NCBI RefSeq assembly: GCF_033153115.1
Contig: NW_026889754.1
Coordinates: forward strand, 17,670,001-17,734,000
DNA from: Saccostrea echinata
Taxonomy: Eukaryota
Length of the DNA stretch: 64,000 nt
Direction of reading: 5' to 3'
A program made the position numbers and the translations under genes. Of this stretch, positions 14,710-60,391 are shown one piece after another (position 1 is the stretch's first letter; each line of letters begins with the position of its first letter). The notes under the pieces were generated by a model that was not told the origin of the DNA, ran no database searches, and worked only from the letters and a program-made list of their open reading frames with translations.

Positions 14710-15246
14710 TCACATATTGGCGTATGTTCCGCTTGTTGAAACGGATCGGGATACTAATTGGTAGCATTTTCTATAATCTTCCTGAAACCAGAAATAAAGA
14801 AGAAAAATGATTTAAATGATACACAGAATGTCATACAAATAACATATTTTGTTAAGAAATAAATAACAAATTTAAAAACTTTTCTGATAAATGAAGTGGG
14901 TCGGTCACGTGATCAAATCCTTTGAAGGCCGAAGGTCTTCTCAGAAGATTTGATCACGTACCGACCCACTTCATTTCCCAGTGAAATTTTTAAACTTGTT
15001 ATTTATTACTTATATATACATTTGAGACGGACAATCGAATATAAATATTGCACGAACTGTTCGTTGTAGATTTTGACAAATTAAACAAGGTGTAAATCGG
15101 CTTGAAAAGCGGCTACGCTTCAAATTCATCTGGCAAAGGATTCTGTTTTTAAGGGAATATTTTGTGCATGGCTACTTGTGATCAATTTTTGTGAGTATAT
15201 TGGTGTCTTGGAATTTTTGAATTCATGGGAACCCATATTCGATGTT

Positions 15247-60391: not shown

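Follow-up and report, generated by a model that had tools for sequence, protein, structure and literature searches.

The known ectodomain classes of receptor-type protein tyrosine phosphatases (PTPs; receptor forms, RPTPs) comprise Ig/FN3, MAM and carbonic-anhydrase-like types as well as short glycosylated stubs, and to our knowledge none of these classes has a head of lectin fold on an EGF stalk; nor do we know of a phosphatase with such a lectin head and EGF stalk in any vertebrate. The R4 phosphatases RPTP alpha and epsilon (PDB 6uzt, 2jjd) combine short, glycosylated, domain-free ectodomains with pre-D1 helices and tandem PTP domains, of which D1 is active and D2 keeps its catalytic cysteine. 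Long arrays of eight-cysteine EGF repeats on type I membrane proteins are found in MEGF10, Draper, CED-1 and SCARF, and the known F-type lectins are secreted or bacterial modules. Our literature searches did not find a description of a lectin-head/EGF/PTP design, and in the searched passages of a review of F-type lectins (PMC5712786) none is named that is joined to a phosphatase.

Here we describe a locus of the oyster Saccostrea echinata at which these modules meet. The window, i.e. the whole stretch of 64,000 nucleotides that was analysed (C5:17670001-17734000 of a 923-Mb assembly), probably holds an expressed gene for a type I membrane receptor tyrosine phosphatase with a lectin-like head, an EGF stalk, a D1 domain with active-site motifs and a dead D2. 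The receptor belongs to a known class but has a new variant of ectodomain, already present under generic names in public predictions.

Results and Discussion

Inspection of the stop-free segments placed all coding signal of 14710-60391 on the minus strand, and a plus-strand reading of this interval was dropped for that reason. From high to low coordinates, the segments read as a hydrophobic leader, two stretches resembling galactose-binding/F-type lectin domains, a row of cysteine-rich EGF repeats, a hydrophobic segment and the hallmark motifs of two PTP domains. The resulting gene model runs from 60391 to 14710 and consists of 34 exons in one open frame, with a coding sequence of 4284 nt corresponding to 1427 aa by phase arithmetic, an ATG at 60391, a stop codon at 14712-14710 and zero internal stops. 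All acceptors are AG and all donors GT, except for a single GC after EGF1 (56606), and each of the 33 exon junctions preserves the frame. Exon boundaries were set by splice consensus and phase, by colinear homologues and by one read-derived junction; 11 annotated oyster proteins are colinear with the window, starting in the head or the first EGF exons and reaching the last exon. Similarity and fold searches used single exons or the database relatives P0047 and P0009 as queries. A single 34-exon frame with this domain order had been proposed in an earlier, sequence-only reading of the locus, and our exon-by-exon rebuild arrived at the same limits and exon count.

Exon 1 (60322-60391) supplies the start codon and a signal peptide (MEEFKK..., with a hydrophobic core), ends in a phase-1 donor and gives an N-terminus like that of the relative P0011. 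The head is encoded by exon 2 (part a, 59929-60159, with AVDG...CSFT...AWWK...YFR) and by exon 3 (part b, 56906-57160, ending in ...EICEVKVMG). In Pfam, exon 2 alone gave a sub-threshold match to F5_F8_type_C (E=0.004) and single EGF exons matched EGF_laminin (E=0.012) and EGF_STAB1-2, both below threshold, so that a profile of paralogous exons was needed. Such a profile of head part a, built from 22 paralogous copies of exon 2, matched 840 proteins in a library of 1.84 billion. Searched against the PDB with hmmsearch, it returned exclusively F-type lectins at E-values from 2.3e-12 to 0.0016 (FBP32 3cqo, 2.3e-12; lectinolysin 4gwi, 4e-7; SpX 2j1r, 1.2e-5; eel agglutinin 1k12, 0.0016), plus one weak further match at 0.12. 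F-lectins were likewise the outcome of a single-sequence search of the PDB with P0009, which matches the two exons of the window's head at 84% and 76% identity. The AlphaFold model used for fold comparison is that of the head of this paralogue rather than of the joined window protein (pLDDT 77.5, pTM 0.75); its best Foldseek matches were 2j22, 3lei, 1k12 and 3cqo together with CBM32 modules (E ~1e-4, TM ~0.5), and SUN, APC10 and muskelin were also among the matches. With the F-type lectins (1k12, 3cqo, 2j1r and lectinolysin 3le0) the head has in common a sequence pattern in the domain's first half (QS..A..A.DG...C..T...WW..L...V..L...R) and, as predicted, the jelly-roll fold. By its sequence the head is thus an F-type lectin homologue, as the earlier reading had supposed, and the P0009 model agrees with an F-type jelly-roll.

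The putative sugar site departs from this likeness. The fucose-binding motif His-x(24-26)-Arg-x-Asp-x4-Arg/Lys with its His-Arg-Arg triad, as given in PMC5712786, does not occur in the head. The position of the triad His (His52 in eel agglutinin) is occupied by Phe in the window and by Ile or Phe in all 22 aligned paralogues, the Asp of the RxD element is gone, and the second Arg follows at +6 rather than +7. R74 is invariant in the paralogue alignment and R80 is conserved in at least 90% of it. The sugar site is hence incomplete and lectin activity may have been lost, and the glycan recognition that had been ascribed to the receptor was overstated.

The head is carried by 13 EGF repeats, the number counted before, each encoded by a single phase 1-1 exon with eight cysteines (12 exons of 135 nt and one of 132 nt; pattern C..G.YG..C...C..C..G..C....G.C...C...W.G..C). 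EGF1 (exon 4, 56606-56740) is atypical and EGF2 (exon 5) lies at 55644-55778. Exons 6-14 (EGF3-11, 42310-53238) consist of a three-exon A-B-C cassette present three times, with exons 6-10 (EGF3-7) at 53238-53104, 51983-51849, 49775-49641, 48531-48397 and 48005-47871 and exons 11-14 (EGF8-11) at 45436-45302, 44060-43926, 43560-43426 and 42444-42310. Like exons of the cassettes are 86-96% identical in nucleotides. The stalk was lengthened by three rounds of this cassette. EGF12 (exon 15, 41657-41791) and the 132-nt EGF13 (exon 16, 39282-39413) complete the array. Together the 13 eight-cysteine repeats form a rigid stalk carrying the head, and the ectodomain amounts to ~780 aa. The GC donor after EGF1 is located at 56605-56606 (CAG|GCAAGA) and is the sole non-GT donor of the gene. 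A dead copy of an EGF exon with in-frame stops (45818-45997, minus strand) was observed in the intron between EGF7 and EGF8, outside the coding sequence.

Exon 17 (38849-38954, donor phase 2) encodes ~25 hydrophobic residues followed by Arg, at the same position as the transmembrane (TM) segment of the homologues, so the protein combines a hydrophobic leader with a single TM segment ahead of the catalytic part, as receptor PTPs do. A long eight-cysteine EGF array on a type I membrane protein is what the gene has in common with MEGF10, Draper, CED-1 and SCARF, but where those receptors have NPxY/YxxL tails, the window protein continues into juxtamembrane segments and a D1-D2 tandem phosphatase. 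Pfam found no EMI domain in the head exons, P0047 or P0009, and the earlier designation of the stalk as MEGF10/Draper-type applies only to the type of repeat.

Intron 17 (38848-36035) contains an assembly gap (37640-37774), 1.07 kb downstream of the TM exon. On its right the gap borders a 351-bp tandem repeat (37775-38385), of which one unit (37775-38035) and 38126-38385 share 99% identity; the repeat could plausibly have caused the gap. To the region 34550-39500 we assigned Logan contigs of four public runs (X1-X4), which are merely guessed to be RNA ('RNA?', small shares), no run being on record as RNA. One X1 contig joint (39282 to 38954) skips 327 bases that correspond to the predicted intron between EGF13 and the TM exon, and a second X1 joint (38849 to 36034) skips 2814 bases including the gap and connects the TM exon with the first juxtamembrane exon, JM1. 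Both joints show CT..AC ends on the plus strand, i.e. GT..AG on the minus strand. It was the second joint that revealed JM1 (exon 18, 35928-36034; basic/acidic, starting RRQYAEKE...), which has a weak pyrimidine tract and had been missed by an ab initio scan. With JM1 in place, the phase-2 donor of the TM exon and the phase-1 acceptor of exon 19 are again in one frame. Exon 19 (JM2, 34606-34754) encodes the pre-D1 helices (YYN...EYK); 34754 is the best acceptor candidate, with an in-phase alternative at 34715, and the match of an X2 contig to the genome covers 34719-34606 and stops precisely at 34606, the predicted donor, with the contig sequence continuing beyond. The ab initio candidates for an exon between TM and JM2, for which a strong pyrimidine tract had been required (e.g. 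37250-37183), were poor and located in repeats, and were discarded once the read joint had placed the exon at 36034-35928.

Because the X1 contig splices across the gap, the sequences on either side are parts of a single spliced transcript, whose frame the gap leaves untouched. A misjoin at this point had been named among the observations that would undo the single-gene reading; instead, the contig connects the TM exon to JM1 with canonical sites. Relative to the window, the X1 contigs show one difference in the TM exon and four in EGF13, and their source may for this reason be an allele or the copy on C17 described below. Most contigs of the four runs matched intronic repeats. The junctions from head to EGF, JM1 to JM2 and JM2 to D1 lie outside the contigs and were set from phase and splice sites together with homologues that are colinear.

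Several repeats were noted in the introns. Intron 17 is repeat-rich at 36700-37550 and 37775-38385 and contains a (TA)n tract at 38412-38496; one of its stretches, over which the contig depths add up to thousands in each of the four runs, is therefore a high-copy, SINE-like element. A tandem repeat family of ~166-170 bp is present in 5-7 copies with 79-89% matches at 15428-16509 and 22235-23155 (introns 33 and 27), where the arrays yield long false ORFs in a minus-strand reading. Within the 7.6-kb intron between JM2 and D1, window positions 27660-34204 gave no conserved coding match to the homologues.

A conserved, wedge-like pre-D1 segment leads into D1, which is encoded by exons 20-27 (23522-26994), with exons 20-23 at 26994-26907, 26062-25986, 25644-25608 and 25399-25302 and exons 24-27 at 25181-25053, 24524-24382, 23977-23842 and 23671-23522. 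D2 is encoded by exons 28-33 (19361-22035; 22035-21936, 21813-21740, 21607-21482, 21218-21096, 20341-20217 and 19496-19361), and exon 34 (14710-14781) adds the C-terminal tail (...YANM) and the stop codon. Single exons of both D1 (E down to 2.6e-12) and D2 (exons 30 and 33) matched PF00102 in Pfam. Exons 20-27 carry the full set of D1 catalytic motifs in intact form, namely a KNRY-like motif, the WPD loop, the 11-residue signature with HCxAGxGRxG, and QTxEQY within the Q loop VQTVEQYVF, and judged by these motifs D1 is catalytically complete. D2 is a pseudophosphatase, since its signature VISKDGAGVTG lacks both Cys and Arg. This loss is common to all relatives, with Ser-Lys or Ser-Ser replacing Cys-Ser throughout the family. 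The D1-D2 part of the relative P0047 has RPTP alpha as its closest PDB match (6uzt, 1.3e-110), followed by epsilon. The likeness to R4 phosphatases, with pre-D1 helices, a D1-D2 tandem and an active-motif D1, is confined to the catalytic part, as R4 ectodomains are short and domain-free whereas that of the window bears a head and 13 EGF repeats, and the R4 D2 retains the cysteine which the window D2 has lost.

P0047 (XP_062603358.1, 1064 aa) bears in S. cucullata the name 'receptor-type tyrosine-protein phosphatase kappa-like', shares this design and aligns colinearly with the window. The combination of head, EGF repeats, TM segment and the 11-residue signature of D1 recurs in at least ten full-length proteins of the databases, and a word search with P0047 found proteins of the full design in Saccostrea cucullata, Crassostrea virginica and Magallana gigas, among them C. 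virginica LOC111112706 and LOC111112824 and the M. gigas 'RPTP epsilon isoform X1' (P0164). The same search returned proteins combining F5/8C and PTP domains in Mytilus, Ostrea and Mercenaria; Haliotis, Pomacea and Sinanodonta gave head-like matches that were weaker. The predicted oyster proteins share with the window protein the signal peptide, head, eight-cysteine EGF repeats, TM segment, D1, degenerate D2 and a ...YANM/V tail, but differ in having fewer EGF repeats (~5 in P0047 versus 13), in a head identity of 30-55% and in their generic names. An architecture that had been called unusual is so in comparison with vertebrates but routine in oysters, where it already exists among RefSeq predictions. 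The names of the relatives (kappa-, alpha-, epsilon-, T- and mu-like, or uncharacterized) vary to such an extent that they reflect no real orthology to vertebrate genes. In S. echinata itself, the model P0167 starts within the EGF array and has no head, and P0009 comprises a head and four EGF repeats under the name 'cell death abnormality protein 1-like'. The generic naming had been foreseen, and so, by and large, had models of this kind, which appear truncated or ectodomain-only.

The gene belongs to a large family. At least 63 copies of head exon 2, nearly all on the minus strand and 41-89% identical, are located at C5:17.36-18.54 Mb and C17:0.98-2.74 Mb, and at least 150 copies of the D1 catalytic exon are spread genome-wide, of which 18 further copies with 82-98% identity fall within these two head-exon regions. 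The lineage-specific expansion that had been suspected is thus visible as tandem clusters of head exons with closely related D1 exons in the same regions. By position, eight of ~27 C5 head exons, that of the present gene included, have a D1 exon of at least 82% identity downstream of them and ahead of any further head; in the present gene, 36 kb separate the two. The same order and strand of head and PTP exons therefore recur at least eight times on C5, and again on C17. The remaining C5 head exons are PTP-less or decayed. Two of the gene's closest head relatives, located on C5 and 87-88% identical in head exon a, have EGF arrays and no PTP exons by tblastn, and the D1 of the gene is closest to other RPTP genes. 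The heads diverge fast and D1 is conserved in what is an oyster-specific tandem family, with PTP-bearing and PTP-less genes of near-identical ectodomains interleaved.

One such PTP-less paralogue lies in the window itself (981-4148, minus strand), with head exons at 4148-3921 and 3066-2794 and EGF exons at 2599-2468, 2255-2121 and 1115-981; over the 18 kb that follow downstream, tblastn found no PTP-like exon. This paralogue is similar to P0011, which consists of a head, three EGF repeats, a TM segment and a short tail with Tyr motifs. The PTP-less database relatives, named after MEGF10/Draper/CED-1 types, either have no TM segment (P0009) or carry short tails with YDNL, YEEL or YENT. The next downstream head exon (C5:17652615-17652854, ~17.2-17.4 kb below the window start) has an in-frame stop and is probably a pseudogene.

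The C17 and C5 clusters were seen to mirror each other in hit pairs with equal scores, a head at C17:1582984 and a D1 exon at C17:1545222 (98% identical) forming the counterpart of the present gene; C17 may represent an alternative haplotype or a recent segmental duplication. Further dense clusters of PTP exons with 49-68% identity occur on C6, C16, C18, C27, C48, C58 and others. Taken as a whole, the tyrosine phosphatases of this oyster appear to have undergone massive expansion, perhaps in combination with other ectodomains.

Could ectodomain and PTP exons belong to two neighbouring genes, or have been brought together by misassembly at the gap, so that the single frame is coincidental? Neighbouring genes that have this head and EGF array but no PTP exons, the ectodomain-only and head-less RefSeq models P0009 and P0167, and the position of the gap right after the TM exon would all fit. 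We nevertheless regard this as very improbable, as the contig splices the TM exon to JM1 over the gap at canonical sites, 33 of 33 junctions hold the frame, the order and strand from head to PTP recur at least eight times on C5 and again on C17, and the whole design is found in single predicted proteins of three other oyster species. That the present copy has fallen silent or is decaying within the array, with only its relatives in use, is somewhat easier to imagine in view of the dead exons and stop-bearing head exons around it and of X1 contigs which are not letter-perfect to the window. It is still improbable given a 4284-nt frame that stays open over 34 exons, intact catalytic motifs, and spliced contigs at least 95% identical on three of the gene's exons.

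A different question is what the head does. R2A and R2B RPTPs work in cell adhesion or tissue patterning, and the present receptor could do likewise if its head kept the F-type fold without sugar binding and served as a protein-binding or self-associating module instead of recognizing glycans or non-self. The replacement of the triad His by Phe (Ile or Phe in 22 of 22 aligned paralogues), the lost Asp and the Arg-Arg spacing of 6 instead of 7 speak in favour of it, as does protein binding by other folds of this superfamily, of which SUN, APC10 and muskelin were recovered by Foldseek. On the other side, two of three basic positions are kept (R74 invariant, R80 at least 90%), tandem expansion and fast-diverging heads are more typical of recognition receptors, and relatives have been reported in haemocytes (PMC13070813). 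On balance we consider a role in adhesion or patterning possible yet doubtful. The haemocyte evidence derives from a 2026 paper in which draper-like, MEGF and RPTP transcripts are co-enriched in C. virginica agranulocytes (PMC13070813); the LOC numbers given there, the basis of our comparison, are near those of family members.

We favour a recognition receptor, in which the head would bind a surface ligand that may be a glycan or, with the fucose triad incomplete, a protein. Control of substrate access by clustering or position has been proposed for RPTP alpha and CD45. In a similar manner, ligand binding could shift the clustering or membrane position of the oyster receptor and thereby alter the access of D1 to phosphotyrosine substrates, with D2 acting as a putative docking or regulatory module. 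The setting would likely be haemocyte recognition.

A more far-reaching and rather unlikely interpretation is that the cluster constitutes an invertebrate 'paired receptor' system, in which one fast-evolving family of lectin-like/EGF ectodomains has received three wirings by exon shuffling in a tandem array. Members with short phosphotyrosine-motif tails would be activating in a Draper/CED-1-like fashion, those without an anchor would act as secreted decoys or opsonins, and those with a built-in tyrosine phosphatase would be inhibitory. The same ligand could then turn haemocyte tyrosine signalling on or off, and on the inhibitory side a phosphatase would be built in, with no need for ITIM recruitment. 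Hints in this direction come from the present gene, two of whose closest head relatives on C5 (87-88%) are PTP-less but whose D1 is nearest to other RPTP genes, from the YDNL, YEEL and YENT tails, and from the joint rise of such transcripts in agranulocytes (PMC13070813).

Conclusion

For annotation, names such as 'kappa-like' and 'alpha-like' imply orthology where there is none, and this genome has models which look truncated or ectodomain-only. The oyster arrays, with dozens of such genes and phosphatase-less twins interleaved among them, show exon shuffling making receptor variants. Should phylogenies and expression bear out a paired-receptor system, the interest of this gene would rise. 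The locus offers a testable case in which an invertebrate without antibodies might tie surface recognition directly to phosphotyrosine control.
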